A DNA stretch of 64,000 nt, taken from NCBI GenBank assembly GCA_010909165.1, contig MU008161.1, positions 1,736,001-1,800,000 on the forward strand, in the 5' to 3' direction. Made by a program: the position numbers and the translations under genes. Position 1 is the first letter of the stretch. Every line of letters begins with the position of its first letter. Source of the DNA: Anthoceros angustus. Lineage: Eukaryota; Plantae; Anthocerotophyta. Positions 22,417-60,858 of the stretch are shown piece by piece. The notes beneath the pieces were generated by a model. That model did no database searches. It saw only the letters and a program-made list of their open reading frames with translations, and was not told the DNA's origin.

Positions 22417-23835
22417 ATGGACCACCCGGCGCATAGGCATGTGCAACAGGCAGACGGGAAGCCGGCTTCCACACCCGTTGCAGACGCGGAGCAGGACAAC
22501 CAGCAGCAGCAGCAGCAGCAGCAGAGGGGAGTGAAGAGAGGCCTTCCCGTTTCCGCACCAGCACCAGCACCAGCTGCCGTTGTTCCCACGGACGAACAGA
22601 GAGCCGCGAAGCGGGTGAGGCGGGACCGGGGCTCCACTGCCAAGGACCGCATTAGCAAAATCCCGCCCTGCGTGGTCGGGAAGCGGAGCTCCATCTACCG
22701 CGGGGTGACTCGACATCGGTGGACCGGGCGCTACGAGGCGCATCTGTGGGATAAGAGCACCTGGAACCAGAGCCAGAACAAGAAGGGGAAGCAAGTGTAC
22801 CTGGGAGCCTACGACGAGGAGGAGGCGGCAGCCCGCGCCTATGACCTCGCGGCGCTCAAGTACTGGGGGCCGGGCACCATCATCAATTTCCCCGTGACGG
22901 ATTACGCGCGGGACGTCGAGGAGATGCAGAGCGTGTCCCGGGAGGAGTACCTGGCGTCGCTGCGGCGGAAGAGCAGCGGCTTCTCCCGCGGCGTCTCCAA
23001 GTACCGGGGCGTGGCCAGGCACCACCACAACGGCCGCTGGGAGGCCAGAATCGGCCGCGTCTTCGGCAACAAGTACCTGTACCTCGGCACCTACAGCACG
23101 CAGGAGGAGGCCGCCGCGGCCTACGACATGGCCGCCATTCAGCACCGGGGGCTCAACGCCGTCACCAATTTCGACCTCAGCCACTACATCAAGTGGCTCC
23201 GGCCAAGGCAGCCTGGATCCTCCGGGGCCGGGGCCGGGGCCGGCTGTGAAGAGGGAGAGGAGCCGGCTCAGAAACAAAGCACTGTTGCTGCTGCTTCTGC
23301 CGCATCTGCTGTTTCTGCTGCTTCCGTTGAGCAGCAAGAGTCCCAGTCCCAGAGCGGGCCGGAGGAGGAGCAGCCGTCAAGGATGTGGCCGGGGCAGGCC
23401 AGCGAGCCCTACCAGTTCCCGAGTCTAGGGATGAGCAATGTTGGCGCGCGGGCGGGAGCGGGGCTGCAGAGGGCCGCGGCAGCGCAGGCTCCCACGGCGC
23501 TAGGTTTGCTCTGGCAGTCCAATATGTTCAAGCAGATGCTGCAGAAGGCGGCTGTGCATGCGCACTCCCCGGCCGACGGGCAGCCGGAGGCCGAGCAGGA
23601 GCAGGAGCAGGAAGAGCTGGAGGTTGAGGGCGAGGCGGACGGGCTGCCTATTCCCATGCTTCCTGGGCTGGAAGAGGAGCCTCCTCCTGGCCTGGGCTAC
23701 GAGGAGGGGCAGGGCGAGGTGGCCTACCAGGATCTCTCATTCTTCCCCGACGGCCACGACTTGGAGCCCGGCCTGCCCGGCTCGTTCTGGAATTCATTGC
23801 CTTTACACCATCCCCGAAGTCCCATTACGGTGTGA
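22417..23835 (+). CDS. Double-AP2 transcription factor, basal ANT/WRI group, most like the SMOS1/At2g41710 (WRI2) clade; intronless
   Basis: [58 protein letters not shown] (AP2-1), linker [18 protein letters not shown], and [40 protein letters not shown] (AP2-2). First in-frame ATG is 22417. Confidence 0.92.
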
Positions 23836-30124: not shown

Positions 30125-32371
30125 TTATGCCTTCCTTCTGAGAGTGCCCTTTGGGAAGCAGCTTAATCGGCTGAAAACTAGACCAGATTTCGGCAAATCT
30201 CCCTTGGAGAGATTGCTGTTGTAGACTTCCCTGCACTCATTGACCACTTCCTTTGCATCTTTGCGAGGGATGCCCTCTCTAAGGGCCACTAACTTCTCAA
30301 CCACTTCAGGTGGACAATCAGGATGACCTTGGAGGAGATGTGTGTACGCAAGTGTAAAAGCATCCACACTCTCTGCTGATGCAAGCTCTCTAAGCTCTGC
30401 CAGCGGCTGAATTCTTTTGTCTACTTTGGCGCTGTTGATGTACTCCTTGAAGAATTCTCCGATGACCTCCTCATCAACCCTCAGCCTGTCCAGAGTCTCT
30501 TCCTTGATGTAGTTCCTCTGAGTTAAAAGGTGATCTACATAGACGATGATGGTCTCTTCCATGCAAGCCTCAGCAAACCTTTGGAAGGAACGGTCATCTA
30601 TGTACATTTTCACATCTCCAAAATAATCACCAAAGGTTGCCACAAGATACTCTGTCACCAACCCATCATACCAGTCTTTGAGGTAGAGCTTTGCAACCAG
30701 CTCCTTGACACCGGGGTCTTCAAATATAACACGGCATGTCTGTTGCACTGCCTCCTTAGCAATCTCTAAGAAGCCCTTGCAGGTATCCTCAAAGTTGACC
30801 TGTTCGGCATAATAAGGAGTAAGGGACTCCATCAGGCTGCTGCTGAGATCCATGGCCAAGCTATAGCATCGAATGTTGTTGTTGATCATGGCACACAAAG
30901 GCTCCAGTCCGATCTCTGTCACCGGATCTTCAAGTCTCTGCCTTTCCGCAACCTGAAACGCACTCATCACCTGGATAACTGCAAGAGCCACCCTGTAAAG
31001 CATAACATCGGTGCTGTTCTCCTGCACATACTGCACCTGCTCACTCAGAATCCTGAAGAGATCCACGGCAGCAGGGGTCCACAGCTTGCCATCCTCACTC
31101 TTCTTGGGGGGCTGGGTCTTATCAGCCTCCAAGATGTTGGTATACCACTTCTGCATAGTCCCCTGCATTCGGTAGACGTAGACATCCATGAGCGGATCCA
31201 TGGCCCCGCTCTCAGCACAGACTTGAGTCAGCTGCTCATCAACCCCTAGGTTCCCTAACTGCACCTGATACTGCACCACCCACGCCGTCACCTTCAAGAT
31301 CTCCAAATTAGACAAGTCCTTGGCCCGGTCTCCAAGCTTCCTAAGCATCTGGATGAACCTCTCGGTATACAGCTGCACCATGAGCTGGAAAATTTCGTAT
31401 CGCGGAGGGAAGCAAGGCGCCACATAGTCGTAGATATCAGGCAATTCTGCCGCAATTGCGCTAGCCTCAGCCAGCGCAGCCTTGAGGTCCGTGTCCAGCA
31501 CCAGCGTGGAGAGCAGGTTGTCGAACCTGGATTCCACAGATTTGCGCATTTCCTCATAACACCGGTCCTTAAACCGCCGGCCTGCAGGCTTAGGCTTGCC
31601 ATCGCCATTCCCGTGCTCCTCCGGCGGCTTCCGGCTCCCTCTGACAGTCGAGAGAGACGCAACAGGCCCGGCCCCCTCCGCCTCCGCCGTGTCCTCCGCC
31701 TGCTGCTGGTCCAGAATCTCCTGCATCTCCACCACTCTGAGGGCCCGCACCAGCGTCTGCGGGCTGGACTTGGAGAGCTGGAAGAAGTTGGCCACATGGC
31801 CCCAGAGCGTCTGCTCGAACTTCTCCCGCGTGCCGTTCACGTCCTCGAAATACTGGCTGAGCTTGCTGGCCTCCTCCTGGCGGGACGAGGCGGCGGCGAG
31901 CGCAAACCTCCGCTTCCCCTCCAGCGCGGCCAGGCGCTCAAACGTGCGCACCAATTCGCGGTCATCGGCGAGCGAGGCCCGCGCCTCGCTCGCCTCCACC
32001 GAGATGGACATCATGCCCTCGACATCCTTGAGCGTGGTGTTGAGGTTGTTGCGCGCATTGCTGAGCAGCTTGATCTGGTCGTGGTGCTCAATCAGCGTCT
32101 GGCACTCGCGGCAGAGCTGGTCGATGAGCAGAAACGACTCCCGCAGCTGCGTGATGGTCACCTGCGCGGCTCCCAGCGCCCCGATCCCGGCCCGCGCGTG
32201 CTCCACCTGCGCCATCACGCTGCTGCTCAGCTGCGTGTCGTGCGCCTGCAGCCGCTGCGCGTACTCGGCCCGCATGCTTGTGATGGACGCCAGCGACTCT
32301 GGCAGCGGCAGCAGCTTCGCCACCTCCCGCACTGCCGCCTCCTTCGCCTCGATCCCTGCATCCTCCAACAT
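30125..32371 (-). CDS. SEC6: Exocyst complex component SEC6; intronless, 748 aa
   Basis: [24 protein letters not shown] start; [40 protein letters not shown] and [19 protein letters not shown] match plant SEC6. Confidence 0.95.
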
Positions 32372-33253
32372 CGTGCTCTGCTGCCGCGCTCTGTCCGCCG
32401 CTGCTACTGCTGCTCCCTTGGAACCAGCTCTTCCTCCTCTCAAACATCCCGATTCACGTTTCCTCCGCCGGCCACTCTGGTCACGACACTACTCGACTGT
32501 CCGTCGTCAATATCGACTTCTGTCGCCCGCATGACCTAAATAAAAGCAAGCCCAGTCCATCTTTCCCGTTTTTAGTGTCAGAATCAGATCCTTCCCCTGA
32601 AACGGTCCTGTGTGAGTACTTATCTACCTACACACGCGCATGCGCATTTAACTGTATGCATTATTGGCTGGACGCAGTCTGCTCTCCGCAATGTGAGCCT
32701 CCACTGTTCAATGATGCAAGGCTTCCGTGATCCTTCCATGTCTCCTCCTCTGGGATGCACCATGGACTTCACGAGTTCACAACTTCACACGGCTACTATG
32801 ACTTATTCTCATGGCCAGCATCTGTTTGCACGAAATGAGCTCCCATTCAACATGCCTCATTACGAAAACGGAACATGAGGATGGCCTCATCCATTTCCCT
32901 CCAGGGTTTCTCTCAGAGCCTCTTGAACAAACCACTGTTCTTCTTCATTCAAATGACCAGAAGTTCTGGCATGCCAATCGGGAAATGCCTGCCATCCCGG
33001 AACTGGGCCCACTGTTGCAGTCCCCAGTCCCCTCGAGGCTCTAAACTGTGGGATCATAGTCTGATGAACGTGCAGGATACGCAAACTTGTCCTGCCACTG
33101 TCGTCCCGGGAGACTTCTGAAAGGGTTGGAGCATTTTTCTGGATGTTTTGATAGTCCGGCCTCTTACGAATAGGAGCTCCCGGGGCAGGCCTGTTGTGGG
33201 GGACGGGATTGTGCTCAGAAAATGTGCTGCAGAGCTATATCTTGCTCGAGCAT

Positions 33254-35686
33254 ATGACAGGACGAATGGCTACCCTTTCTCTGTCGAGCACAGGTCCGTG
33301 CGGATGGTTTCACAACAAATCCTTTTGGTGTCGTTTGTCGCCTAACAATGTGGCGTCCAGCTCCAGGAAAGGTGGGAAGGGAGGAAGGCTCTTCTCCGAC
33401 AGGTCCCAAGTACACGCACCCTGGTTGAGTGTCGACGGCAATGAGGGGCATGTGAGAGCTGGGTTTGATTTGGCTTCACTGGGAAGAGAGAGTCTCCTGG
33501 AAGGATGTGAGCATCGTCCGTGCTTCGACCTGGATTTGGCAGTGCTTCTTGCAGGTTTTGCTTTTGAGTCTTACAACACTCCCCCGGAGAAGGCTGGTAT
33601 CAGGGAAGTAGACGCTATTGATTGTGAGGTCACCTACACCGATAATCAATTCCTCAGGGAAGTGTACAAGGGACTGCTGAAAGTAAAGCTCAAAGGAGGT
33701 ACCAACCTACCTGGCCTAGATCTGTGGGGCACAAGCGATCCTTACGTGGTATTCAACATTGGAGGAACTGTTGCACGGAGTAGGACCTGTTGGGCTACTC
33801 TGAAGCCCGTGTGGAACGAGGCATTTAGCCTGAATGTGAAGGATCCAAGCAGTCAACTTCTCAGCATTGCTGCATGGGATGCCAACATCATCACAGCACA
33901 CAGGAGGCTGGGGAACACGAGTGTCAGTTTGGAGCCCTTTGCCGATGGGGAGAAGCATGTGTTGGAAGTTCAGCTTGAAGGTATCGGTGGTGGAGGTGTT
34001 CTAACTCTTGAGATCCAGTACAGAACGTTTGAGCAGCTGGATCTGGAGAACCGTGGATGGGGGATTAACCTGCTGTCAGAGTTTCTGAAAAGTGAAATGC
34101 TGGATTCTGCCATCAGATCAGTGTTTGGGAAACAAGGTATCAAAGCACGGGACTTCGTTAGTTCAGCCTTTGGGTTGGACCCTACAAGCCAGCTCAGTGC
34201 TGGATCAACGACCTCCACAGATAACGAAGGTGGCTCAGAAGACAAAACAGCAACCTCCTCTGGCTCAAAAAATGAAGGGAAGGGGTCAGCCAGTGATGAC
34301 CTTGATTGGAAGTACTTGCAGCCAGTAAGCAGTGCAGTTACTCGGGCGATTGAGTTCTTCCGGTTAGGGCCTGCAGAACTTCCAAGAATTGATCTGTCTA
34401 ACTGGCAACTTGATGACAAGATGATGGCCATTGGTTTAGAGTCTCAGGCCAAGGCCGAAGCTCAATATGTTGAAAGGGGGCTAGCGTTACCTGGTGAGCA
34501 GGAGGGAGGCAAACTGAGTGGTACACCAACTGTCACAACCTCAAATCCAAAAGACTTGCAGCAAGTATCCAGGGATACCCTCCATCAAACGGAAGAAATT
34601 CTTGGCTCATGGATGATGCAAACATTGGCTGCAACCGGAGCCTTGAATGAGAGCACAGCTTCTCACAGCGAAGAGCGAGGTAAAGAGAGCGATGACCCAT
34701 CTGGACGAAACGTAGCAAGGCAGAAAGCTACAAAAGACATCTTCAAGACAGCTGAAAGTGCAATGGAGGCTTGGGCAATGCTGGCTACTGCATCTGGAAG
34801 TCGAAGTTTTGTGAAGTCTGAGTTTGACAAAATTTGCTTTGTGGAAAACAAGAGAACAGACACTCAAGTTGCTGTGTGGAGGGACGACAGACGGAAACGA
34901 GTCGTTGTTGCCTTTCGAGGAACAGAGCAGACAAAGTGGAAAGATGTTCAGACTGATCTTATGCTCGTACCCACCGGGTTGAACCCAGAAAGAGTGGGAG
35001 GAGGATACAGCAAGGACGAAATCATGGTGCACAGCGGTTTTCTGACCGCTTACGATTCTGTGAGACCGCGTCTTCTTGCAATCACACAGGACATAGTGCA
35101 GACGGGCAACAGTCCTGATGACAGCAAACGTCATGTGCCATGGCATGTGTATGTGACTGGGCACAGCCTTGGTGGTGCCCTTGCCACACTGTATGCCCTG
35201 GAGCTTGCCAAGTCCAAGCTCGCAAAGGCCGGCCTGATCAGCGTATCCATGTACAACTATGGCTCTCCCAGAGTGGGAAACAAGGCCTTCGCGGAGAAAT
35301 ACAACGAGCTAGTAAAAGACAGCTGGCGCATCGTGAACCATCGAGACATCATCCCAACCGTGCCAAGACTCATGGGCTATCGCCATGTAGCGGAGCCCAT
35401 CTACCTGGCGAAGGGCATAAATCTGCTGGGCCAGGAGGAGACTCTGGACCTGTTAGAAGATGGCTACCGAGGAGACACTATTGGCGAAGTTTGTCCTGAC
35501 TACATCATGGAGGAGGTAGTGAGAGGCGAGATGCAGCTGCTGGAGAAGCTGATCCACACAGAGGTAGCCATGTTTAAGTCGATCAGGGACGGCAGTGCAA
35601 TTATGCAGCACATGGAGGACTTCTACTACATTGCACTACTGGAGCTTGTGGAGACGAAGATGACTAGTGGCAGGAGAAGCCTGTAA
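33254..35686 (+). CDS. Plastid-type C2-domain class 3 lipase (At4g13550/HIL1-like); intronless
   Basis: FDLDLAVLLAGFAFESYN, C2 domain GLDLWGTSDPYVV...PVWNE, AFRGTEQTKWKD, GHSLGG catalytic motif, RIVNHRDIIPTVPRLMGY. Start could be 33254 or 33266. Confidence 0.9.
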   Translation: MTGRMATLSLSSTGPCGWFHNKSFWCRLSPNNVASSSRKGGKGGRLFSDRSQVHAPWLSVDGNEGHVRAGFDLASLGRESLLEGCEHRPCFDLDLAVLLAGFAFESYNTPPEKAGIREVDAIDCEVTYTDNQFLREVYKGLLKVKLKGGTNLPGLDLWGTSDPYVVFNIGGTVARSRTCWATLKPVWNEAFSLNVKDPSSQLLSIAAWDANIITAHRRLGNTSVSLEPFADGEKHVLEVQLEGIGGGGVLTLEIQYRTFEQLDLENRGWGINLLSEFLKSEMLDSAIRSVFGKQGIKARDFVSSAFGLDPTSQLSAGSTTSTDNEGGSEDKTATSSGSKNEGKGSASDDLDWKYLQPVSSAVTRAIEFFRLGPAELPRIDLSNWQLDDKMMAIGLESQAKAEAQYVERGLALPGEQEGGKLSGTPTVTTSNPKDLQQVSRDTLHQTEEILGSWMMQTLAATGALNESTASHSEERGKESDDPSGRNVARQKATKDIFKTAESAMEAWAMLATASGSRSFVKSEFDKICFVENKRTDTQVAVWRDDRRKRVVVAFRGTEQTKWKDVQTDLMLVPTGLNPERVGGGYSKDEIMVHSGFLTAYDSVRPRLLAITQDIVQTGNSPDDSKRHVPWHVYVTGHSLGGALATLYALELAKSKLAKAGLISVSMYNYGSPRVGNKAFAEKYNELVKDSWRIVNHRDIIPTVPRLMGYRHVAEPIYLAKGINLLGQEETLDLLEDGYRGDTIGEVCPDYIMEEVVRGEMQLLEKLIHTEVAMFKSIRDGSAIMQHMEDFYYIALLELVETKMTSGRRSL

Positions 35687-39873: not shown

Positions 39874-40920
39874 CTAATGAAATATAAGAAAGTTGTAATG
39901 TTTTATCCCGTCATACCATAGATTTATTGTATCATTGTCCTCTACATTTTTCTCATTGTCACACATATCTGCTTTGTGTTTTGAGTTATCTTCCGCATCA
40001 AATAGCACATTAGGTTTGTATTCTGAAGCTTTCCAAATGCCATTAACACAATTCACATATACAGCAATGGGTCGCCTTAAGAAGAATGCAAGCATCTTTA
40101 GTTCTAACTCTCCACCCCATATTGTTGGTTGTCTCATCCTGTTTACATAGTTATCAAAATCCCCTTCTACAATCCACGAATATATCTCTCGATACTTCAA
40201 TAACTCTTCCATAGCACATTCTCGCAATAGATTTGCTAGCTTTAATTCTACATCTTCCTTCTGACCTTTATCGTCAACTTCAAATTCTATGGACTTGTCA
40301 ACCTCTTCAATATCACATTCTTGTAATAGATTTGTTAACTTCAATTTTACATCTTCCTCCTGATTATCACTTTTATTATCCATTTCTAATTCTATGGACT
40401 TGTCAAATTCTACCATATCACATTCGCGTAATAGATTTTCTAGCTGTAATACTACATCTTCCATACCACATTCTTTTGAAGTATTTGCGAACTTTAATTT
40501 TCCATTTTCCTTATGATGATCACTTGTATTGTCTATTTCTAATTTCATGGACTTGTCCTTCTCTAGATTTTCATATATTCTGCTTTTATATAATCTCTTT
40601 TCTTTTTTTGTTAGTCCAGCGACTACAGAGCGAAAGAGACAATTTCCATCTCCTTCAATCGTGATGATTTCATATTCACTTCCCTTGTATACGTGGGCAT
40701 GAATTGGTGGCAGGAAAGCACCTGTGGTGCCTTGACTACACGTGAAACACCCATAGACATATTTGACGTATATCACACATAGTATAGGAATTAAGGCAAG
40801 GAGTAGTAATTCCAAAAAAGATGAATACATGCTTAGAATATCAACAATTAAATTCATCTTCAAAATGAAATAGAGCCCGATATCTTCAGATAAAAGTCCC
40901 CAGGAAACCAGAATATTCAA
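39874..40920 (-). CDS. OTU-domain cysteine protease (deubiquitinase-like, OTU4-like core) with an acidic repeat insert
   Basis: IEGDGNCLFRSV (Cys box), WIVEGDFDNYVNRMRQPTIWGGELEL, YDGIKHY (His box). The true start is uncertain because the ORF track uses a non-ATG start. Confidence 0.75.
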   Translation of the reverse strand: MNILVSWGLLSEDIGLYFILKMNLIVDILSMYSSFLELLLLALIPILCVIYVKYVYGCFTCSQGTTGAFLPPIHAHVYKGSEYEIITIEGDGNCLFRSVVAGLTKKEKRLYKSRIYENLEKDKSMKLEIDNTSDHHKENGKLKFANTSKECGMEDVVLQLENLLRECDMVEFDKSIELEMDNKSDNQEEDVKLKLTNLLQECDIEEVDKSIEFEVDDKGQKEDVELKLANLLRECAMEELLKYREIYSWIVEGDFDNYVNRMRQPTIWGGELELKMLAFFLRRPIAVYVNCVNGIWKASEYKPNVLFDAEDNSKHKADMCDNEKNVEDNDTINLWYDGIKHYNFLIFH

Positions 40921-47206: not shown

Positions 47207-48161
47207 TGTCACGAAGACGGTCAGGTAAGTGAGATAGTGAGCTAAGGGTTGGTGCTATATATGCACCATTTACGCTCATTAATTAACAATTGTTTAGTAG
47301 GCGTACTTTGGATATGATTAGCTATTTTTGCATTACTAGATATTAATTAGATCGTAAATGGTGAAGGAAATTAGCTATTTCGATAGAACATGAAAACCCG
47401 GTAGTGGCTCGTGGGCTCACGCACTGACTGCGCTAAGCGCCTAATGATGTTACGAGGTGAAGATGGTGTCGCACCAAGAGCATGGTGATGGCGAACACGA
47501 CAAGGACACGAAGGTTGGAGATGGCGGTAGCGGGCGATTGTTGAAGTCCGTCGGCGAATCTGAGGACAACCGGAATACCATGATTTGTATATGATCTTTG
47601 TGAATACAAGATTTCCTTTGTGTGCACGATGCTCGGCGGTGTCATGGTGTGTGTGTCTTGCGGTGATCGCGGATTACCAACCTGCAACCCGCTTAGGGTA
47701 GCCCTTTTAACTTTCGTGTGTGAAGAAAGCCACAGCACATGTGAGTGCAGTTGGCTCGTCTACTTCAACAACTGCCTTCGAGGAGCATGGAGCTCGTTAG
47801 CGTCTTGGCTGGAGCAGGAGAAGCTTGCACCCTTACGGCTCTGCAGGTGAGCTCCAGCAGTGATTCTTAGTCAACATTGAAATTGGCGGTCTCGAAACCG
47901 GTCGGCAGGTGATGTGGCTGGCGATCGACTTGTGACTTGGGTTACAGTCACAGGTGGATAGAAGAGGGCCGGTTACAGGCTTTGCACTTGGATCAGCGAA
48001 TTTTGCACTTGACTTGGATCGGCGTTGTTTTACATTCGGTGTGCTGGAGAGTGGTTCCTAAGGCTTGGGTGGTGTGCAAACCTTGTCTTGAGGAGGTCCG
48101 GCTGCTAGCATCTCAGCGATGGGTAATGCAACCCGTGAGCAAGAGGCAAGCCCACGTTACA
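47207..48161 (+). repeat. 5' LTR (right end inferred)
   Basis: Starts TGTCACG; the first 555 bp or so match 55766-56319. CGTTACA at 48155-48161 is a near-perfect terminal inverted repeat, so this right end is inference. Confidence 0.6.
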
Positions 48162-48295
48162 GTTGAGGACTAGGGACGTGCCATTGGGCACTTTGGAAGG
48201 GACTGGTTCTAGAAGGAGGGTGGGCGCCGTGAGCAAGATAGTGCCACCGTTGTAATGGGAACACGAGGAGGAGGACGGTCACGCTGCATCTCCAC

Positions 48296-49700
48296 ATGGC
48301 CTGGTCACCCTTTGCACAAGTGGTGCACGATCTAGGGCAGGAGAATGGTTACAGCTTTGTGAACACACCACCTGCAGCCTGTGGCAACCAGGGGATTACT
48401 GGACAGGCTGGTGAGGTGTCAGGAGAGTCAGATACCGACCCTCCTGATAGCATGGAAGGAGCACCTTCAAGCAGGCCAGAGAAGTTCTCCGGAAGGCCAG
48501 GAACTCAATCATTGAGGGACTTCCGTTTCCGCATCAATGAGGTGATCAGCCGCGTAAAATTCAAACACGCATGCTTATAATCACCGATATGTTCGAGCAA
48601 CTCTCGGCATATCTTCCGATGAGGCTTTGGACCTCTATGAGGCTTACCACGGAGCTCGCCTCAACTGTGGCAACACCTAATCCTTTGTTTCAGAGTGCCA
48701 TACAGATGGCTACTGCTGCGAAACTTACAGCAGCAGTAACTGCACATCAGCAGGCCATAGCCGCTGGCACAGTGGCTGCCACGGTGCAGCCTCCTACGAG
48801 TGTAATCCTTACTCCAGTAGAGAGGGCTGCAGCTGCTTTGGGTGTGGATGAGTTTCTTCAAACTCCCAAGTATGCCAATCCAGTTGAGGAATTTATCAAA
48901 GTCTTGGAAAAGGCTTTCCCTTTGAAAACGCCGGAGAAGGTGGCGAACTTGCAAGCTTCGTCACGGAAGGGGAGATCAGATGGCTTTTCGCAGACTGTGA
49001 AGCTACGAAGGCAGCATGTTGAGCGGATCAAGAAGCGGTGAAAAATTCCTCACGACCCTAGAGGGGATCAACTCTTTCACTTCCATGCTATACGCCTTGG
49101 TGGATAAATATGGTGATAGCTATACCTTGGAGCGGTACATGAGGAAGGCAGAGAAGAAGGAGATAGCTTACTCCGTCTTTTCCTCCAAGCACACCAAGTC
49201 TTTCCACCATTATCACAACATGTTTGCGGGAAAAGGAGCAGTAGGATCAGGGAGTAGTTCAGCTCTCAAGGCGGCTCCAGCTAAGCAAGCCAAGGCGGGG
49301 CGACAGAGGTGGCGCAATTACATCCGCTCTGTTTGTGCAACCATTGCGCACCGATATATTTCCCCAAATTGTAAGTGCCCTCGGGCTTCTGCACTCCTTT
49401 GCCGGAAGAATGGGCACGTGAGCACTGTATGTTTCCAGCTCCATCCGAGCGGAGGTATCGAAGCTGATCACGGAGCTACCACAGCTAGTGCGGGAGCGAG
49501 TTCAGCTCCTAGCAAAGCTGGAGTCTCAAAAAGCAAGCAGCAGAGGGAGAAGGCAAAGGCCAAGGGAGCAGTCACAGCTGAGAAGGTCAATTCCTTGGAG
49601 GCAACAGTGGCAGCTCTGAGCTCCCAACTTGCAGCCATGACAAGGATACCCCTAAGCCGGCAGCCATGGTCACGTTGGTGCCCACACAGACCGAAGGAGA
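48296..49700 (+). pseudogene. Gypsy gag with CCHC zinc knuckle, frameshifted
   Basis: RPEKFSGRPGTQSLRDFRFRI capsid-like motif; C..CRKNGHVSTVC at about 49390-49435. Confidence 0.75.
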
Positions 49701-50339
49701 GGATTATGGGGAGCCACATCAGGTGTGCATGGCCAACAAGAACCTGGATGTCAGCATGGCTGATGCAAGCACGCTGCCAGCCACATGGGTCGGACAGATG
49801 TTGCAGCATCCCATGGTGGGGCTGGCGTATTTGTGACAATTGGGCGATTACGGCTAGCGGGCAAGGCGATCATGCCCAAGTCCTTTTCACCCTTGCCACC
49901 AGGATCTGCCATCCCAATCAGGGGACAGGAGCATTCAGCGCTGTTTGAAACCAATGATGGCAGGGCTCAGTCCCAAGGAAGTCATCACCCGGCAGGGAAT
50001 TTCTTGTACATGGTGCCTCAGGCCCTCACAAGTGAACAGCTGGCTAGGAAGCTGGTTGATGTTCCTGTTTTTACGCTGCAAGATTTGGGCATCCACCGGG
50101 GCGCTTACGGCGGATGTTCTGACCAGGAGAAGCGTGAGACTCCGGTGGCTCGGTTGGCATTCATGACCAAGTGGGAAATGTGAACCGATCTGCAGATCCC
50201 ATAGAGGGGATCACAGTAGCTGGAGTTCCACAAGCAACAGGGCACACCAGCAGTGCACCCAGAGTGCAGCCCACCAATAGGCTGGGCATCCGAGTGCGCA
50301 ACGCAGTCATCGACAACAGCACAGGGTGTGTCACTGTCA

Positions 50340-50690
50340 ACGGCCATGCCCCCAAGGTGGTTTTGCTAGACACCGGAGCACGCCCATCATCATAGGCAAG
50401 GTGTTGGCTGCCAGGTTGAAGTTGAAAGGTGATACCTTAAGGATCTCTCCATGGAACATTCGGACGGCCTCCGGAGCCATCGAGCCAGTTTGTGGAGAAA
50501 CCATCAAGCCAGTGAACATCACTCTCAACCCTGGAACGCCAGATGCTATGACGCTGGCGCTGCCCTGTTTGGTCACGACAGCCACTAACTACGATTTGTT
50601 GTTAGGGCAGGAGTTCCTCTATCCACCAGGGGTTTGTGTTGACAACTGGTCAGAGGAGGCCTTTTACAGGCAGGCGCCAAGGTGGACGCA
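50340..50690 (+). pseudogene. Retroviral-type aspartic protease domain
   Basis: KVVLLDTGA (DTG at 50369-50377) ... YDLLLGQEFL. Confidence 0.85.
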
Positions 50691-51009
50691 AGATTGCAGC
50701 TACCGTTGGATTTGCATGGCCGATTGATGCGTCGCTTCCCTTGTGGTGCCAAGTTGTACCGCCACCACTTGCAATTTTGTGGGTGCGTGACACTCGTCGG
50801 TGGACCAAAGATCTTGAGGCGATCATGAGGAGGGCTCGGCGGTTTGTGCTATTACATTGAGCGGTGCTCACACGGCTGATCACCGGCCGTGGCTACTCGC
50901 CACCTTCAAGAAGCCGATAGTAGCCTTGCCCGCCATCTTTGGATCTGAGGCAAGTACATTCGGTAATTCCACAATGAGCTCCCGTGTGATTACATGGGCC
51001 CCGGCACAC

Positions 51010-51880
51010 CCTCGACTCACCGTGGTGGGTGTTTGGAGGCATTTGTACCGGGTTGGAGGCCCTTCTGAGGCCTTTCCATCGGCGGTACATCTGCGATAAT
51101 GATGTCACCGCCGAGGATATTGCACATTTACCGCAAGATGTCCTCTTGACTACCGGTGAGGCGTTTCACAATGCCTTTGAGGCTTTTCCCCAAGACATCG
51201 ATGTGATAATCACGACAGCCACAGGATTTGTGGACCTCATTGTGGCCGGATGGGAGTGCTGTGATTTTCCAGAGCTGGACATGGACTAGGCTTGCAGGAT
51301 GCTCGGTCCGGTTATTCGAGATTTGCACCGTGTTCTTGCACAGGCCCGCTAGACATCCGCAATGCGCGTACCTTGGAGAATACCCAGCACCGGATCTCGA
51401 CCACATGTACAGCAGACATGGCTATTGTCCGACATTATGCAGGCCCCACTACTTATGGATGCGATGCAGGTGGGCGGTTATGCTCACCGCCAGAATAACT
51501 CTGGACCAACTTTGGTTCCGATCCACGGTAGCCGAGTTGGCTCTTAGCACCATCACACGTGATCACGATTTGCGATTGCGAGTGTGTTGGAAGACTACCA
51601 TCAGCCTGCACTGTCACAAGTGAGAGGTCGCCATGGTTTGTCACCAATGTGCCGTGATGCCGTGCCACCTTACCCACGCTTGTTAGTTTCCTGGATCATA
51701 TGCTTACCGGGCTAAGGGAGTGGGTCACTTAACATTAACACTCGGCAATGGGAGGAGCTGTGTAGAGGAGAAGGAGCGCATAATGGGCTTTTCCCTTTGC
51801 ACCGCGGCTCCCAGGTGTCACGTCCCCGGCAGCAGTGAAGATTAGGCGAGCCATGGACCTTCACGCCATCACTTGGTCGG
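51010..51880 (+). pseudogene. Cytosine-5 DNA methyltransferase domain within pol, frameshifted
   Basis: Stitched motifs in order: I VFGGICTGLEALL (51029), IV VDLIVAGWEC.DFSRAG (Cys 51257), GLQDARSG, VI LENT (51373), VIII DAMQVGGYAHR..WTN (51458), IX VEEKERIMGF (51762), X RAMDLHAITW (about 51845). Confidence 0.8.
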
Positions 51881-52069
51881 TCACCTTTGCTTGGCATTTC
51901 ACTCCACGCGTGACTCGCCATCCCGCCTTGACTTGTTTGCACATACGTGCTCACCGATGCCGCTCATATTCCCTTTCCGGTACTCACATTTGTCCTTCCG
52001 ACCGGATCTTTGGGGGTGGAGGCCCTCATGGGGACTCAAGCCAAAGATTTTCACCTCGACCGAATGAGC

Positions 52070-52930
52070 AGGATCCCGCAAAGATCTTTCCATGGAAGAT
52101 GGGTCCTGATCTTACAGCTGTTCAGCAACAGCGGATTCTGGATTTGCTGTTAAGATACCGGGATTGTTTCTCCTTTACCATGAAGGAGTTAAAGAGGTGC
52201 AATGTGATGAGCTTCAGGATCAATCTCACGACCACGGAACCCATCTATAGGCGCAGGTATCGACTCAGCAAGACTGAGTGGGACATGGTAGATGCGCGCT
52301 GCAAGGAGCTGTGGGAGGCAGGCCTTATTCGGCCCTCCAACGGTGACTATCTTTGCGGCTACCGTTATGCCTCCCAAGAAAGATAGCCAATGTGGACGGA
52401 GAAAAGGATGTGCGACTATCGCCCCATCAATGCGATTCTGACCCGGATAGGTATCCCATGCCTACCGAGGAGATCTTTGATGATGTTGGGCCACATTCTT
52501 GACACCCTCGATCTGCGCCGAGGTTTCAATCAGGGTGGCGTAAGAAGATGTTAAGAAAAGCGCATTTCATGGGTCCAATCACTGGAATGGGTTGTGATGC
52601 CATTTGGTTTCAAGAATGCCCTGACATTTCGGAGGGTTATGGATGTGGTGTTAGCGTGCCTCCTACCTCATGTGCTACATTGACGTTCTCGTACCGAGAT
52701 TTTGAGAGTCACCTAGAGCACTTGGAGGACCTGCTGTGCTAAGAAAGGTGAGTTAACTTGTCACCCCGCCAAGTGTGAATTTGGCATGGGGACTGTGCAT
52801 ATTTAGGGCATAGGATCGTGCCTAATGGTGTGACGCCGCATCTTGCCAAGGTTCGAGCAATCCGGTGAAGGAACCCACCAATGTCTCATCGAGGGCATTC
52901 ATTGGGCTATGCAATTACTATCGTATCTAC
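52070..52930 (+). pseudogene. Gypsy reverse transcriptase, frameshifted
   Basis: EPIYRRRYRLS...CKELWEAGLIRPS, DYRPIN, DRYPMP, TLDLRRGFNQ, MPFGFKNA, CYID(D)V, KCEFG, YLGHRI. Confidence 0.9.
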
Positions 52931-52939
52931 ATCCGAACT

Positions 52940-54060
52940 TTAGTCGAATTGCTAAGCCGTTGAATGACCTACTGCAAGGATGTGGTGGACTTGGGGTGAG
53001 CGGCAGGCGAGCTTTTTAATCAAGGAGCGTTTGACATGACTCCTATCATGGCGAACCTAATTTTGAGAAGCCCTTTGTGGTGCACTGTCGGAGCGCCTCG
53101 GCTTGGGAGCCGCATCGGCTCAAGAGGATGAGCATGGAGAGCAAGTCATTGCTTATGCTTCAAGAAGCAACAACCGTCTTTGAAGCAAATTACGCTCTGA
53201 GGCGAGTGCTTGGCCGTGGGTGTGTGCCACTGCCATATTTATATGGTCGAAGTTTAAGCTGATGACAGATCATCACCACTTAAGTGGTGATGACTAACAC
53301 CAAGCTTAGTGGGAAGCTTACTTGGGCAATGATCCTGCAAGATTATGATTTTCATGTTGAGCAGGCCGGGGTCACACACCAAAACGCGGATACCTTGTCC
53401 AAACCCGGACGAGCACGTGATCTCACGGAAGCAAGGCGGGATGCCGCGGAAGATGAGAGTGAGGTTTCCTCATCTTCGCCTTGGTGGCCATGACACATTT
53501 AGTCGAATTGCTAAGCCGAATGACCTACATGAGATGTGGTGGACTTGGGGTGAGCGGCAGGCTTTTGACACTGCTGAAGGAGGCGTTTGACAACGACTCC
53601 TATCATGGCGACCTAATTTTGAGAAGCCCTTTGTGGTGCACATGAGGAGTCGCTCGGCTTGGGAGCCGCCCCGCTCAAGAGGATGAGCATGGACAGGAGC
53701 AAGTCATTGCTTATGCTTCAAGAAGCAACAACCGTCTTTGAAGCAAATTACAGCTACTGGCGAGTGCTGGTGGTAGGGCATGTGCCACTTGAGCCATATT
53801 TATATGGTCGGAAGTTTAAGCGGTGACAGATCATCACCACTTAAGTGATGACTAACACCAAGCTTAGTGGGAAGCTTACCGGCAATGATCCTGCAAGATT
53901 ATGATTTTCATGTTGAGCACGGGCGGGGTCACACACCGCTGGATACCTTGTCCAAACCCGGACAAGAGCACCGGTGATCTCACGGAAGCAAGGCGGGATC
54001 TTTGCCGGAAGATGAGAGTGAGGTTTCCTTTCATTCTTTTGGTGGCCATGACACATTTAG
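52940..54060 (+). pseudogene. RNase H region present as two tandem copies of about 560 bp
   Basis: FEKPFVVH, VIAYASRSN, TDH.PLKW, WAMILQDYDF occur twice; tttagtcgaattgctaagccg recurs at about 52939 and 53498. Confidence 0.85.
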
Positions 54061-54249
54061 GTCGACTTGTGTAGACGCAGCCCAACATGTTAGCAAAGAC
54101 ATCCGGGAGGATGAGCATTCAATGCAGTACCTGCAGACAGGTCAAGTCAGCATTGATTGGCCGCAGGTGGAGCAGGAACGTGTGAGGAAGCGTGCAACTC
54201 TGTACAGCTGGCGTGATGGCTATGTGCTACGGCAGATGGGGCACGGAGT

Positions 54250-55292
54250 GGAACGTCTGGTGCCACCTCCGGCAGACCGAGAAGGCCTCATCAGCAGAGT
54301 ACATGAGGACATGGGCCACTTTGGGGTAAAGAGAACTTACAGTCTCTTGGTTCCCCATTTTTATTGGCATGGAATGCATGCACAGGTGAAAGCACATGTG
54401 GCCTGTTGTGAGCCTTGCGGCAGTCAAGGCTTCGTTCACAATGCAAGATCCTAAGCTACATCCTCGCCCATCATGGGTTTGTTTTTAGGTGGTCATGCGA
54501 TCTTATTGGCGAGCTACCCGAACACCTAGAGGGAATGTCCACATACTTGTGATGATGGAGCATTGCTCTAAGTGGGTAGAGGCAGTGGCCTTGCCAGACA
54601 AAACCTCTAAGAGCACATCGCAAGCATTTCTCCAGAACGTATTGAGCAGGTTCGGGAGCTGCGCTGAGTGCTTGACGGACCAGGGGTCTGAATTCAGGGG
54701 AGAATTTCAAGACCTCTTGGATGCCGCACTCATCGACCACCGCAGGACCAGCAGGGATCACCCACAGGCTGACGGACTGGCCGAGCGCATGGTGCAGACC
54801 ATCAAGAGAGGACTGCGCAAGCTCTGTTTGCAGCACGGCAAAGGGGAATGGGATCTCATGCTGCCCTACATTCTGATGGGCTACAGACTCAGCAAACACG
54901 CAGCCTTGGCCCATTTCTCCCCATATTTTCTCCTTTTTGGCAGAGAGCCAGTGCCACCCAGCGCCATCGCCAAGCAAATGCAGGAGGTAGTGCCACAAGA
55001 TGACCCAGCCACTTGGGCCTCGATGATAGGTGACAGGGCTGTGCTTTTCCGACATGTGATGCCAATGGCAATGGCAAACCTTCACATAGCTCAGCACAGA
55101 GACACGCTCAGGTATGCCCATACAAGGAGTGGCAATTTTAGACCCAAGCTCAAGAAATTCAGAGTGGGCGATTTCGTCTATCTTCGCCAGACGGACACAT
55201 TGGAGACACACCACGGTCAGCAGATTCGTGAAGTGAAGCCCAATGGTGTCTTGGTTTTGTGGCTCATGGCGTGGTCATTTCGACCATACTAA
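54250..55292 (+). pseudogene. Integrase (HHCC zinc finger + DDE core)
   Basis: HEDMGHFGVKRT...FYW...CCEPC; EHCSKWVEAVAL, LTDQGSEF, HPQADGLAERMVQTIK, SPYFLLFGREP, VGDFVYL. Confidence 0.92.
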
Positions 55293-55360
55293 GAACTGCA
55301 CCATGCCATCTTAGAACTTGGATCCGACTATTGTAACAGTTAGGTACCACCTCCGACACC

Positions 55361-55543
55361 TCGGTGTGTAGGAGGACAGATGATGCGGAATTGATGCTAT
55401 TATGTGATGGCTGCAACGGAGGCTTTCACCTTTTTTGTCTCCAGCCACCACTTGCAGAAGTACCGGAGCAGATGTGGTTTTGCTCCAAATGCTCAACAAC
55501 AGGTGCAGCAATGTGCCACTTGTTGGGCCAGATTCAGGTGTGA
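55361..55543 (+). other. PHD finger downstream of integrase
   Basis: In-frame SVCRRTDDAELMLLCDGCNGGFHLFCLQPPLAEVPEQMWFCSKC (C4HC3 spacing; the first Cys is missing), stop at 55541. Not called by the ORF track. Confidence 0.85.
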
Positions 55544-55605
55544 AGACCAGCCGTGTGTCATGCTGGCCATTTGCTTGCTACTGACCTCACCAGCTGGGGG
55601 GGGGT

Positions 55606-55765
55606 GTAGAGGGATTGAATTTTGAATTTACTGTTTTTCATCGCTGGACAGCCACTCTGAGGCAGGGGCTGTCCCCAATTTTGCCAGCCCTTTTACAGCT
55701 GGAGAGGCCCTTGGTAGCACAAGTCCATCAGAGGTGCTCTCGCTTGTGTCGATGCCAAAGGCACA
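55606..55765 (+). repeat. About 160-bp segment duplicated at 56320-56485, flanking the 3' LTR
   Basis: tgtagagggattgaattttg...gatgccaaaggcac occurs on both sides of 55766-56319. Confidence 0.9.
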
Positions 55766-56319
55766 TGCGCGAAGACGTCAGTAAGTGAGATAGTGAGCTA
55801 AGGGTTGGTGCTATATATGCACCATTTACGCTCATTAATTAACAATTGTTTAGTAGTCAAAGTAATGGATAACAGCTTAGCTATTTTTGCATTACTAGAT
55901 ATTAATTAGATCGTAAATGGTGAAGGAAATTAGCTATTTCGTGGCCGGGCCGCAAGCCCGCAAGTGGCTCGTGGGCTCGCACTGTGTACGCTAATCGCCT
56001 AATGATGTTACGAGGTGAAGATGGTGTCGCACCAAGAGCATGGTGATGACGCGAACACGCAGCAAGGACACGAAGGTTGGAGATGGCGTCACGAAGGCGC
56101 TTGTTGAAGTCAGCGAATCTGCGAGGACACCGGAATACCATGATTTGTACCGATCTTTGTGAATACAAGATTTCCTTTGTGTGCACGATGCTCAGTGTCA
56201 TGGTGTGTGTGTCACACCGATCGCGGATTTACCAACTCTGTGCAACCCGCTTAGGGTAGCCCTTTTAACTTTCGTGTGTGAAGAAAGCCACAGCACATGT
56301 GAGTGCAGTTGGCTCGTCT
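55766..56319 (+). repeat. 3' LTR, apparently truncated
   Basis: Homology to the 5' LTR stops at ggctcgtct (56319). Confidence 0.8.
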
Positions 56320-56505
56320 TGTAGAGGGATTGAATTTTGAATTTACTGTTTTTCATCGCTGGACAGCCACTCTGAGGCAGGGGCTGTCCCCAATTTTGCC
56401 AGCCCTTTTACAGCTGGAGAGGCCCTTGGTAGCACAAGTCCATCAGGAGGTGCTCTCGCTTGTGTGCTGATGCCAAAGGCACGACACTGGTCCACATAGG
56501 GCCTA

Positions 56506-56838
56506 CAAAGCCACACTATCGACGATTTGAGACGACTGTATGTGGAAAAAAGCCACACTATTGAGGATTTGAGACGACTGTATGTGGAAAAAAGCCACAC
56601 TATCGAGGATTTGAGACGACTGTATGTGGAAAAAAGCCACACTATCGAGGATTTGAGACGACTGTATGTGGAAAAAAGCCACACTATCGAGGATTTGAGA
56701 CGACTGTATGTGGAAAAAAGCCACACTATCGAGGATTTGAGACGACTGTATGTGGAAAAAAACCACACTATCGAGGATTTGAGACGACTGTATGTGGAAA
56801 AAAGCCACACTATCGAGGATTTGAGACGACTGTATACG
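56506..56838 (+). repeat. 42-bp tandem repeat, about 8 near-identical copies
   Basis: Unit AAGCCACACTATCGAGGATTTGAGACGACTGTATGTGGAAAA; translates to (EKSHTIEDLRRLYV)n. Confidence 0.95.
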
Positions 56839-59504
56839 GAAAAGGAGGAGAAAGTAGAGGAGCTTATCGCGTAGTTTGGAAACTCCTGGGAATCATCCGT
56901 TTCAGCAGCAACTAGGATAGGAGCTGAGGTAGCAGATTTAAAGCGGACCATCTACATGCCTTGACCCGTGAGTTGCATGTGGCACGGGCCTTTCATTGTA
57001 TGTATCACGAGCTTTCTTAGCTTACATGGGACCTCTGGAGTAGCAAAGTTGGCGTCGCCAGGAATATACTCCACAGGAGCTCGGGAGCAGCCAATTGAGT
57101 AGAATCTGGCACAGCTCCAACAACATTGATGTTGCAACAAATGGGCAAAGCCCACAAGTTACCTCTTCTCCATATTCCTCGCCTCCATCCTACTGTTGCT
57201 GTTGTTCCTCCTCTTTACGGGTGACGAGATTGAGTTTCTAGTGGGGGAGCAGGCAAAGATAATCAAAGAGGCTGAAGGCGCTCCCAGCGAGGCAAATGAG
57301 GGCACAGGAGAAGGCCGATGAGATTTCAGCATCCATCATTTTGAGCGCTGGAGGGGGTGTCACAAATTTGAAAAGCTTCAAGATGCGACTACCAAAACTT
57401 TGCTTTAAAATTTTGCTACAACATGCGTGGAAAGGGCTACCAAAGGCCTCAAATCGATGTGCAAAACATGACGGTTGTGGTCATACCCACCCGCATATTT
57501 TAGCTTCAAAAGGGCTCAGTCATACCAACTTGTACATTTCACCTGATCTTCAATAGCGCTTGGCCATACCAGCCTTTACATCTTAGCAATTGCTGACGAA
57601 CAAAGGTCATTCTTTCCTCATCTATGTTGTGCTCACAACATAGATGATTGACAATTGATTGCGTATTCCGACTTTTTTCATGCTAAGCTAACCTCAATTA
57701 AATTAGGCATAAGCAGGCCACCCGCATTGCATGACAAAGCTGCTCTTTGGGATTTCCCATCTCTTTTTCTTACATAAAGTTTCCATTTACCTTCATGTAC
57801 TAAGGAATGGATGAGGTAGCCAAAGAAAATAAAGCTAACTTTAGAACGTAGATTATTGAATATATACATATATATTTATAGTGGATAGCTCGGGTCTACA
57901 TTCCACTTGAATTGCTGAATTGACGATCTCGTTTTTGGTGGGTCTCGACTTCACCATTCAATTGATTCTATTGGTTTGACAAAAGTTGGGAACATGTGCA
58001 GGGTGGTGTCCTACACCTTGTCATGCAATTATATAGATCATTCGTCAAAACGCCTAGTTTCTGTATTTTGCAGAAGAGCACCGTAGTAAAATATTATTAT
58101 GAGTAGTGAAAATATTATTTTGGGTAAGTATCTTCTATCTCGGTAAGAAACATGAGTCAGGTTCTGTGGTCTATATTTGGTGATACCGACAAGTATTTTG
58201 CATCGCGCTTATGGGTTGATATGCTACGCCTATTCTTGCTTCGCACATCTATTAGAGAGCCTCTTCAACACCAACATGCAGTTGTCATGAGTGGTGTTTG
58301 GTGAGTGTGCTTGGAGCGATGCGGCGCGGTGAAGCGCTGCAGTGCCGTGTACGGTGGGGCATGTCCCAGGGTTCAGGGCTTGCTTTGTGGTGGTATATGT
58401 GGCTCTAGAGCAAGGGACATTGGGGTTGATATTGCGGTGAGCATAGGGTGGAGGAGGTTGCGGTGAGGACAAGATTTAGGGATTTTCGTGCGACATGATT
58501 TACGGATTTTGGTGCAGCGGCTGTGGTGGGTGGTGTGGAGGAGGAGGTCGCGATTATTTTTATTTTTATTGATTTTTTGAGGTTATGACTTCTATTATCG
58601 TTAAGCGTAAAACAGTTAAATATGTAGATAAGAGGGTATCAATATTGGAGACTAGATTACATAGTATTGAGGACAAATATGAAGACAACGCGGTATTTGT
58701 ATTGGAGACTAGTGTTTACTTAAAATTGAGGCGGAGAATATTTCCTTAAGGGAAAAATATGAGTCTCTTTTGGCTAAACACCAATCTTTGGCATGGGACT
58801 CGAAGGACGAGGGGGTGAGGAGGGCCAGGAGGACGAGGGTGATGAGTTCAATTCCGTAATGCATGATCTTATAGATAAGAGATTTAATAATCAAGATGTT
58901 ATCATTAAATAATTACAACAGGATCTTGAATCGGCAAGCTTATGGGCTAAAGATTTTGAAGCGTCTTTCCAGGTCAAGTTTGATTCATTGCTTTTGCAAG
59001 TCAATGCCTTCAAATTCCTGTTCCTTGTGTGGGTTGCTTGTCGAAGGCAGATGTAGCACCTAATTTGGAAGGCTACAAGAAGGTTATTCTCGAGCTTATT
59101 CATGCATAGAGGGAAGAAGGCTATAAGAAGGTTATTCTCGAGCTTATTCATGCACAGAGGGAAGAAATGCACAGTTATATGGCCAAAAAGTTGCAAGGTT
59201 TGGATGATCAGGTTGATGGTATTGATTGATTGAAGATTATTTATCTTGTTTAAATTTTACTTTTATATTAATTCTAATTATTTTACTACAATCTATGTAG
59301 TTATCATATTTCAGTCCCATCACGGAAATCCGTCCTTAGTGGACTTAAATAAAATTCTTTTTCTTCTTTTCTTCTTTATGTACGTATCGCCGATTGGATC
59401 TGTCGCACGAGGTGTTTCCTCCAATTAGGGCTTTGTGTTGGTGGTGTTCAAGTTTGCGTTTTGGTGAGGAAGGGTGGCAAGAAGCAGCTGCTCGGGGATA
59501 CAAG

Positions 59505-60858
59505 ATGTTGATTAGGATAAGGAGTCGCGATGGTCTGGAGCGGGTGAATTTGGATTCGACTGCCGCTGTCCACGATCTGCAAAGTGCCATTGCAGAGAAT
59601 TTGAAGGTGCCCGTCTCGAACCAGGTCATCTCAAGAAATCAGGCGCTGTTGCTGTCCAAAGACTTCAATTCAGCTGCTGCGCACAAGGATCTGGGGGATA
59701 AGTCGGCTTCTCTCGCATCCTTGGGAATTGCAAATGGAGCCATGGTGTTTCTGTACTATACCGGGGAGCGGGTGGTCGCGGGGCCGACTGTCAGTCCTGC
59801 TGGGATCTTCGGCAAGAAGATGACTATGGACGATCTGATAGCCAGGCAGACCCGGATTGAGAGGCAAGAGAAGCCGCACTGCTCCTCCCTGTCCTTTGAC
59901 CGGGATGCTGCCAATTCCTTTCAACATTATGTGCATGAAAGCCTCGCTTTTTCGATCAAGCGGGGAGGGTTCATGTACGGGACTGTGAGCGAGGGAGGGG
60001 ATCTGTCCGTGGAGTTTATATACGAGCCACCGCAGCAAGGCAGCGAGGAGAGCTTGCTGTTGCTAAGGGATCCCGAGGAGGAAAGGCATGCGGACACTAT
60101 CGCAGCCGGTCTGGGGATGCAACGTTTAGGGTTTATCTTCACCCAGACCGTGAGCCAGAACAAACGGGATTACACCCTCTCCAACGGAGAAGTGCGGCAG
60201 GCTGTTGAACTCCATGCTGAAAGTAGCCTCCCAGGATGGGCAACGGCAATTGTCAAGCTGGAAGTCAACGAGGATGGTGCAGCTGATGTGCACTTTGAGG
60301 CATTCCAGCTGAGTGACCAGTGTGTGAAGCTGTTTAGGGAGAATTGGTTCGATGATGCAGTTGAAGGGGTGGATGCCAAGAACACAAGGATGAAGAAGGA
60401 TGTCGTCATAGCCGGGAAGGACACTCGTGATGTGGACAACGACTTTTTCCTTGTTCCTGTCAAAATTCTCGATCATCAGGTTGGTTTTCCCACACAGTCC
60501 ACTAATTTCCTGCCTCCTCCTACACCTAGCTGAGGTCTTGTTGCAAACTTGTCCGCTCACAACCTGCTGTGGGATATTGTCTGTCTTGCAGGGAACACTG
60601 TCATGCTCATTTCCAGTCGAGAACAGGTTACCGACTCCCACCTTGCAGTCCTTGAAGGCACATTTGGACCGAAACAAAAGCTTACCGTATGTGAAGAAGA
60701 TCTCGGACTTCCATCTGCTGCTCCTGCTGTCAAACTACCTGGACGTGAACACGGATGTCCCTCAGTTGGCTGAGGCAGTCCGCACTGGGAGCTCTGTCCC
60801 AGATGGCTACCAACTTATCATAGACTCCTTCGCAAGCAACTTCAGCCAATTCGGTTAG
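59505..60858 (+). CDS. NPL4: NPL4-like protein (CDC48/p97 cofactor); two exons
   Basis: MLIRIRSRDGLERV, KKMTMDDLIARQ, FSIKRGGFMYG, VEFIYEPPQQG; exon 59505-60479, GT-AG intron, exon 60592-60858 (SFPVENR, ISDFHLLL). Confidence 0.92.

Follow-up and report, generated by a model that had tools for sequence, protein, structure and literature searches.

A decayed Gypsy-type retrotransposon with a DNMT3-like methyltransferase domain in its pol region from a probable hornwort host

Can a Gypsy retrotransposon of a land plant carry a DNA methyltransferase of its own, and can the copy that raises this question still make the enzyme? The locus in question lies in a stretch of 64,000 nucleotides deposited under Anthoceros angustus (GCA_010909165.1, contig MU008161.1, positions 1,736,001 to 1,800,000 of the forward strand; hereafter the window, with positions counted from its first letter). 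A first-pass annotation had read it as a Gypsy element encoding its own cytosine-5 DNA methyltransferase. Such an element-borne enzyme inverts the usual picture of a host that silences its transposons, and few cases have been published. We conclude that window positions 47218-56482 very probably represent one copy, old and inactivated, of a 'Gypsy-DNMT3' element, a kind of Ty3/Gypsy-type retrotransposon; the copy is about 9.3 kb long. The domain order predicted from its sequence is gag, protease (PR), DNMT3-like C5 cytosine methyltransferase (DNMT), reverse transcriptase (RT), RNase H, integrase and PHD finger.

Three-frame translation of the plus strand from 50950 to 51960 yielded VFGGICTG ... 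AGWEC in the frame of 50990-51286 and FSRAG..GLQDARSG ... LENT in the frame of 51265-51495. These were followed in order by GGYAHRQ, LWTN one frame over, LPTLVSF, EEKERIMGF and RRAMDL. Across the frames, motifs I, IV, VI, VIII, IX and X are collinear in canonical order over about 300 residues, downstream of a protease DTG at 50369-50377 and upstream of RT similarity starting at about 52087. All C5 methyltransferase motifs that the first-pass annotation had quoted between protease and RT were recovered there, on the plus strand and in shifting frames.

The separate frame pieces found no match in Pfam or among PDB sequences, because they are too short and decayed. A phmmer search of the piece 50990-51286 (99 aa) against 1.84 billion representative proteins returned five matches with E < 0.001. 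P0001-P0003 (TIG, TPR and repeat proteins) were discarded as low-complexity or repeat artefacts. P0004 (230 aa) matches PF00145 at 1.9e-9, carries G-W-P-C-Q-G-F-S and has DNMT3A chains as its best solved relatives (1e-6), aligned from motif I to motif V. P0005 (727 aa) contains RT and RNase H, followed by the same DNMT domain with G-W-E-C. Word-seeded protein searches starting from P0004 and P0005 added more than 120 further proteins. The pieces of the window alone do not give the match to PF00145 that had been proposed as a check, for lack of power and not of homology; it is reached through the relatives.

Six-frame translation of the whole window gave 2663 stop-to-stop pieces, all of which were searched with a family hidden Markov model (HMM). 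The top four matches fall within 50990-51842 (+) and follow the order of the profile, covering profile positions 8-103 (E 2e-9), 104-118, 162-186 (E 0.035) and 255-297; the later three are independent evidence, since only the first piece had served to find the family. As query for a protein-to-DNA local alignment that tolerates frame changes, we used the DNMT domain (337 residues, X at its one stop) of L003, an 8.4-kb metagenome contig (ENA ERZ22866046) on which a single frame of 2382 codons, interrupted by one stop, extends from gag to the PHD finger. Against 50900-52000 the score was 383, compared to 39.9 ± 5.5 (maximum 66) for 100 shuffled queries, and 58 other stretches of the window scored 59 or less. 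The excess persisted at frameshift penalties of 20 and 30. The alignment takes in 50992-51899 (+) and 327 of the 337 query residues, with 47% identity over 307 aligned residues, and delimits a DNMT3-like domain that has its full extent from motif I to motif X but is broken.

In its motifs and its modelled fold, the methyltransferase is of the DNMT3 type. In an alignment of 14 full DNMT domains from the family, the W and C of motif IV, the E of motif VI, the R, W and N of motif VIII, the E-R ... G of motif IX and the G ... D of motif X are invariant. The residues of motifs IV, VI and VIII are likewise invariant in another alignment (A3). A profile of the 14 domains retrieved DNMT3A at 3.6e-17, DNMT3B/3C at about 1e-15, plant DRM at 1e-7 and M.HhaI at 2e-6, and 11 of the domains matched PF00145 individually. 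An AlphaFold model of residues 725-1062 of P0131, the nearest intact relative, whose DNMT domain is of the Glu-Cys type, was built with A3 and reached a mean pLDDT of 90.6 and a pTM of 0.89. All 50 top PDB matches of this model were DNMT3A/3B/3C (E about 1e-18, target TM about 0.8). With these animal catalytic domains the family shares, besides the fold, the order of the motifs and the DNMT3-type forms of motif I (F-x-G-I-x-T-G) and motif VIII (A-H-R-x-R-x-x-W-x-N). Retained are the catalytic Cys, which in this branch forms part of Glu-Cys, the Glu of motif VI and the DNMT3-type motif VIII AHRxRxxWxN. The element-borne enzymes differ from the animal proteins in overall sequence (about 20% identity), in their retrotransposon polyprotein context without PWWP or ADD, in a longer region between motifs VIII and IX and, in the branch of the window, in the replacement of the motif IV Pro by Glu.

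Motif IV of the window reads G-W-E-C, with the catalytic Cys present and preceded by Glu instead of Pro. A census of 125 domains counted Pro-Cys in 65, Glu-Cys in 39 and Ser-Cys in 2, and the dipeptide switched at least six times on the DNMT tree described below. 'WEC' is therefore a recurring state of the family and not a product of decay. The earlier reading, 'WEC instead of PC', was correct about the catalytic Cys, but what it described is not a local oddity. Comparison of the family sequences suggests that purifying selection maintains the Glu that precedes the catalytic Cys.

The remaining domains place the methyltransferase within a Ty3/Gypsy element, as PR, RT, RNase H and a DDE integrase were found in that order and the element is collinear with L003 from gag to the PHD finger (tblastn). 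The gag-like region (48452-49948, +) comprises the open reading frames (ORFs) 48571-49041 and 49016-49948 and matched residues 1-410 of L003 ORF1, collinear in three frames; the L003 gag similarity spans 48452-49639, and the Pfam search of the window ORFs found no gag family there. The aspartic protease (50252-50670, +) has one frame change, is 47-49% identical to the protease of L003 and P0123, and matches PF13975 gag-asp_proteas weakly. RT and RNase H (52087-53442, +), interrupted by stops and frame changes, align with residues 155-639 of L003 ORF2 at 34% identity (E 1e-54) and with the Closterium protein P0018 at E 1.7e-37. These values are from tblastn; the frameshift alignment of the whole element was gap-filled in the RT region under linear gap costs and was not used there. 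Next to them, 53498-54069 (+) is a tandem duplicate of 52939-53510, the RNase H part of pol (blastn, 86% identity over 603 columns). The two copies of this duplication of about 570 bp (52939-54069) are about as diverged as the terminal A repeats of the element.

The integrase (54092-55259, +) comprises an H2C2 zinc finger and a DDE core (PF17921 2.5e-15, PF00665 3.7e-11); its core, 54522-55259, stays in one frame and is 63% identical to L003 over 292 residues. At its C-terminus, the Pfam search of the window ORFs found a PHD finger (55364-55507, +; PF00628 2e-13; 65% identity to the L003 PHD) and no chromodomain. Two further claims of the first-pass annotation are borne out. The domain set is that of a Gypsy-type retrotransposon, and the methyltransferase belongs to the polyprotein: the DNMT remnant lies between PR and RT in the window, and in P0121, P0131 and L003 DNMT and RT are encoded in one frame.

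The ends of the element are not plain long terminal repeats (LTRs), since the repeats are laid out as A1...B1-A2-B2. Repeat A (545 bp) is present at the 5' end (A1, 47218-47761, +) and again near the 3' end (A2, 55775-56319, +), with 88% identity between the copies. Repeat B (160 bp) stands on each side of A2, as B1 (55605-55764, +) and, at the 3' end of the element, as B2 (56320-56482, +), and these two are 97.5% identical. A B-like sequence adjoining A1 was not found. We take this layout to be the split-direct-repeat design of DIRS/PAT-like elements. Two Closterium copies (L005, L006) and L008 have the same split repeats, and in L008 the A and B copies are 99-100% identical. In the window, A1 and A2 are separated by a Kimura two-parameter (K2P) distance of 0.12 and 11 indel events over 532 aligned bases. 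A 42-bp tandem array of about 8-11 copies, 97-99% alike, begins inside B2 and extends over 56465-56926; it yields long artificial ORFs on both strands.

Is this copy still able to produce the enzyme? As assembled, the DNMT part (50992-51899) contains 16-18 frame changes and 1-2 in-frame stops, and further breaks are located in PR, RT/RNase H, the N-terminus of the integrase and the linker to the PHD finger. The assembled sequence thus predicts that the copy cannot make a polyprotein and is dead, so that an element encoding its own methyltransferase, as first read, is not supported for this copy. The locus itself is a relic without function, and its value lies in what its family shows.

In public data this DNMT-Gypsy family is represented by over 120 distinct polyproteins, many of which are open and longer than 1900 aa. 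Named hosts are several strains of Closterium (Zygnematophyceae) as well as Haematococcus lacustris and Hariotina reticulata (Chlorophyceae), and most members come from metagenome contigs; contigs L003, L008 and L004 belong to samples ERZ22866046, ERZ22147080 and JGI 3300081900. Many Closterium proteins join zf-CCHC, PR, PF00145, RVT, RNaseH and rve. P0121 (1494 aa) runs from DNMT through RT and RNase H to integrase, and P0131 from gag through PR and DNMT to the start of RT, each with DNMT and RT in a single ORF. The DNMT domain occupies the same pol position as in the window in L003, L008, L004, L002 and the Closterium copies, whereas in L001, Haematococcus, Hariotina and the majority of the metagenome proteins it follows RNase H and precedes integrase. 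A tree of 100 DNMT domains inferred by maximum likelihood, in which the window was read through with X at each break, resolved two clades (SH-aLRT 98) that correspond to these two architectures. The position of the domain changes once on this tree. The before-RT clade holds the window, L003, P0121 and Closterium, and the window is sister to L003 with a support of 92 and a long branch of its own.

Within the Closterium DNMT domains, dN/dS was 0.09-0.11 at a dS of 1.5-1.8, which is near saturation and makes the ratio a rough one. The DNMT domain of the relatives thus appears to be under purifying selection. Judged by their sequences, the relatives close to the window look young. The 90% cluster of P0123 has 8 members from several samples, and L003 and L008 have one private stop each, at different places. 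Single in-frame stops were seen at L003:4124-4126, L001:2333-2335 and L008:6913-6915, in or just after the DNMT domain of polyproteins that are otherwise open; each may be a nonsense mutation private to a young copy, or a site of read-through. In Closterium sp. NIES-54 (GCA_949281255.1), the gene models at L005 and L006 span stops and frame changes of decayed DNMT-Gypsy copies. Predicted introns bridge the breaks there, and the deposited Closterium proteins are therefore partly artificial.

Taken as a whole, the relatives allow a broader proposal, which we consider plausible though somewhat short of probable: Gypsy-DNMT3-PHD would be an old, widespread family of the green lineage, whose hosts include chlorophytes (for example Haematococcus and Hariotina), Closterium and a probable hornwort, with two architectures linked by one changeover and a repeated swap of the motif IV Pro to Glu under purifying selection. 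If this holds, the family would carry a working, possibly non-canonical element-borne methyltransferase, with near-intact young copies in L003 and L008. The breadth of the family, the single change of the domain position in pol and the conserved Glu-Cys variant go beyond the published picture. The family spans chlorophyte and streptophyte hosts and pairs a methyltransferase with a PHD reader on the integrase.

Several points weigh against reading the locus as an old, dead Gypsy-DNMT3 copy. The damage is uneven, with 16-18 frame changes in the 900 bp of the DNMT and none in the 740 bp of the integrase core, and the mismatches and indels between repeats A1 and A2 are clustered between identical runs of 65-79 bp. 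We know of no tested precedent for a motif IV in which Glu replaces Pro, and the activity of any Gypsy-borne DNMT3 is still unproven. Finally, no Klebsormidium protein was among the relatives returned, which is weak evidence as the searches were bounded by shared words and length windows. Given the uneven damage and the clustered A1/A2 differences, some of the breaks may stem from errors in the assembly, or the element may be a mosaic; the patchy pattern could reflect older and younger parts, gene conversion or a local error of the assembly. Taken further, the same observations (clustered breaks, a clean integrase core, repeat differences in patches) would fit a copy that is intact or nearly so in the organism, with its frame changes introduced by long-read assembly of a repeated, methylated region. 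We regard this as quite improbable. Long host ORFs are unbroken in the same window, namely those of an exocyst Sec6 (771 aa, 30125-32443, -) and a C2-domain class 3 lipase (830 aa, 33194-35686, +). The inferred frame changes do not sit at homopolymers (4 of 42, against a background of 10%), and the element also contains in-frame stops and the diverged internal tandem duplication of 570 bp. It is hardly conceivable that the motifs arose by chance or are part of a host DNMT3 pseudogene, a fragment of which just happens to be located within or beside a Gypsy element, even though single pieces have no Pfam or PDB match. The alignment score lies about 60 standard deviations above the shuffles, the domain holds the same pol position in the L003, L008, L004, L002 and Closterium copies, and collinearity with L003 extends to either side of it. 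On the HMM pieces, this collinearity and the shuffle scores, we rejected a chance origin of the motifs and a host DNMT3 pseudogene, and likewise a nested insertion of foreign DNA as the source of the domain.

An inactivated Gypsy-DNMT3 copy thus remains the preferred reading, and its kinship with the published element KnitGypsy-Dnmt3 of Klebsormidium nitens has to be weighed separately. In the absence of a Klebsormidium match, this kinship rests on shared design and not on direct alignment. The same missing match would suit an independent acquisition of the DNMT3 domain, as would the two different pol positions of the domain within the family and the recurrent capture of DNMTs by retroelements (de Mendoza et al., 2018, PMC5890265). 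Against a separate origin, which we consider unlikely though deserving of attention, stand the bounds of the searches and an unusual trio of features common to both elements: Gypsy domains, a DNMT3-type enzyme in pol and DIRS-like split repeats. KnitGypsy-Dnmt3 was described as combining Gypsy domains with 'the structure of repeats ... of a DIRS retrotransposon' (de Mendoza et al., 2018, PMC5890265). Like the element in the window, it is of the LTR/Gypsy type, has a non-rearranged DNMT3-like domain inside the Pol polyprotein, ends in repeats as in DIRS/PAT elements and not in plain LTRs, and resides in a streptophyte. Purifying selection on the DNMT would be a further likeness (Ka/Ks < 0.2 there, a rough 0.09-0.11 in the Closterium relatives here). 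The two differ in host, K. nitens there and a probable hornwort here, and in the copy here being dead. They also differ in motif IV, which is Glu-Cys and not Pro-Cys in the branch of the window, and in the PHD finger after the integrase, which is absent from the main text on KnitGypsy-Dnmt3 (de Mendoza et al., 2018, PMC5890265).

Gypsy-DNMT3 in a streptophyte alga has been in print since 2018, and publications of 2025 and 2026 treat 'streptophytes (Gypsy-DNMT3)' as established. The locus adds a further host, probably a land plant. By its Sec6 gene the host is a streptophyte; the first-pass annotation had not established a land plant. A search of the literature library available to us found no report of Gypsy-DNMT3 in land plants; if the host is a hornwort, the published range widens from algae to land plants. 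Other known systems share single features of the family. SymbioDIRS-Dnmt3 and SymbioLINE-Dnmt of Symbiodinium are likewise retroelements with a C5 methyltransferase in their coding region, but they belong to the tyrosine-recombinase DIRS and LINE classes, occur in another host kingdom and are considered to have captured their enzymes independently. Chromoviruses also have a chromatin-reader module fused to the C-terminus of a Gypsy integrase; here this module is a PHD finger (PF00628) and not a chromodomain, and a DNA methyltransferase is carried in addition.

What could such an element do with its two chromatin-related modules? The nearest solved relatives of the PHD finger are KDM5/Lid PHD1, CHD4, BAZ2A/B, WSTF and UHRF1. 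Most PHD fingers of these proteins read unmodified H3 tails. A PHD finger after the integrase was also observed in L001 and L003, which represent both architectures of the family. In the relatives, the methyltransferase is translated as part of the polyprotein, and active elements may methylate their own cDNA or the new insertion site. The integrase PHD finger, resembling readers of unmodified H3 tails, might steer integration to silent chromatin unmethylated at H3K4. On the enzymatic side, the first-pass annotation had stated that de novo CG methylation was shown for retrotransposon DNMTs. This holds for the dinoflagellate DIRS-type enzymes and not for the Gypsy type, since CG methylation in yeast was obtained with SymbioDIRS enzymes only (de Mendoza et al., 2018, PMC5890265). 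The Gypsy-type DNMT3 domain of Klebsormidium nitens produced none there; as human DNMT3B also failed to methylate, the authors regarded the test as inconclusive (de Mendoza et al., 2018, PMC5890265). The near-intact relatives L003, L008 and P0121 provide concrete domains for testing.

The element is surrounded by host genes. In addition to Sec6, whose nearest Atlas clusters are from Streptophyta, and the C2-domain lipase, the window contains genes for an AP2-domain protein (22390-23835, +), an OTU protease (39874-40920, -) and an NPL4-like protein (59394-60533, +), all five with long ORFs free of interruptions. Exact look-ups of ORFs from the element and from host genes found none of them in the protein collection, and Rfam gave no match across the whole window.

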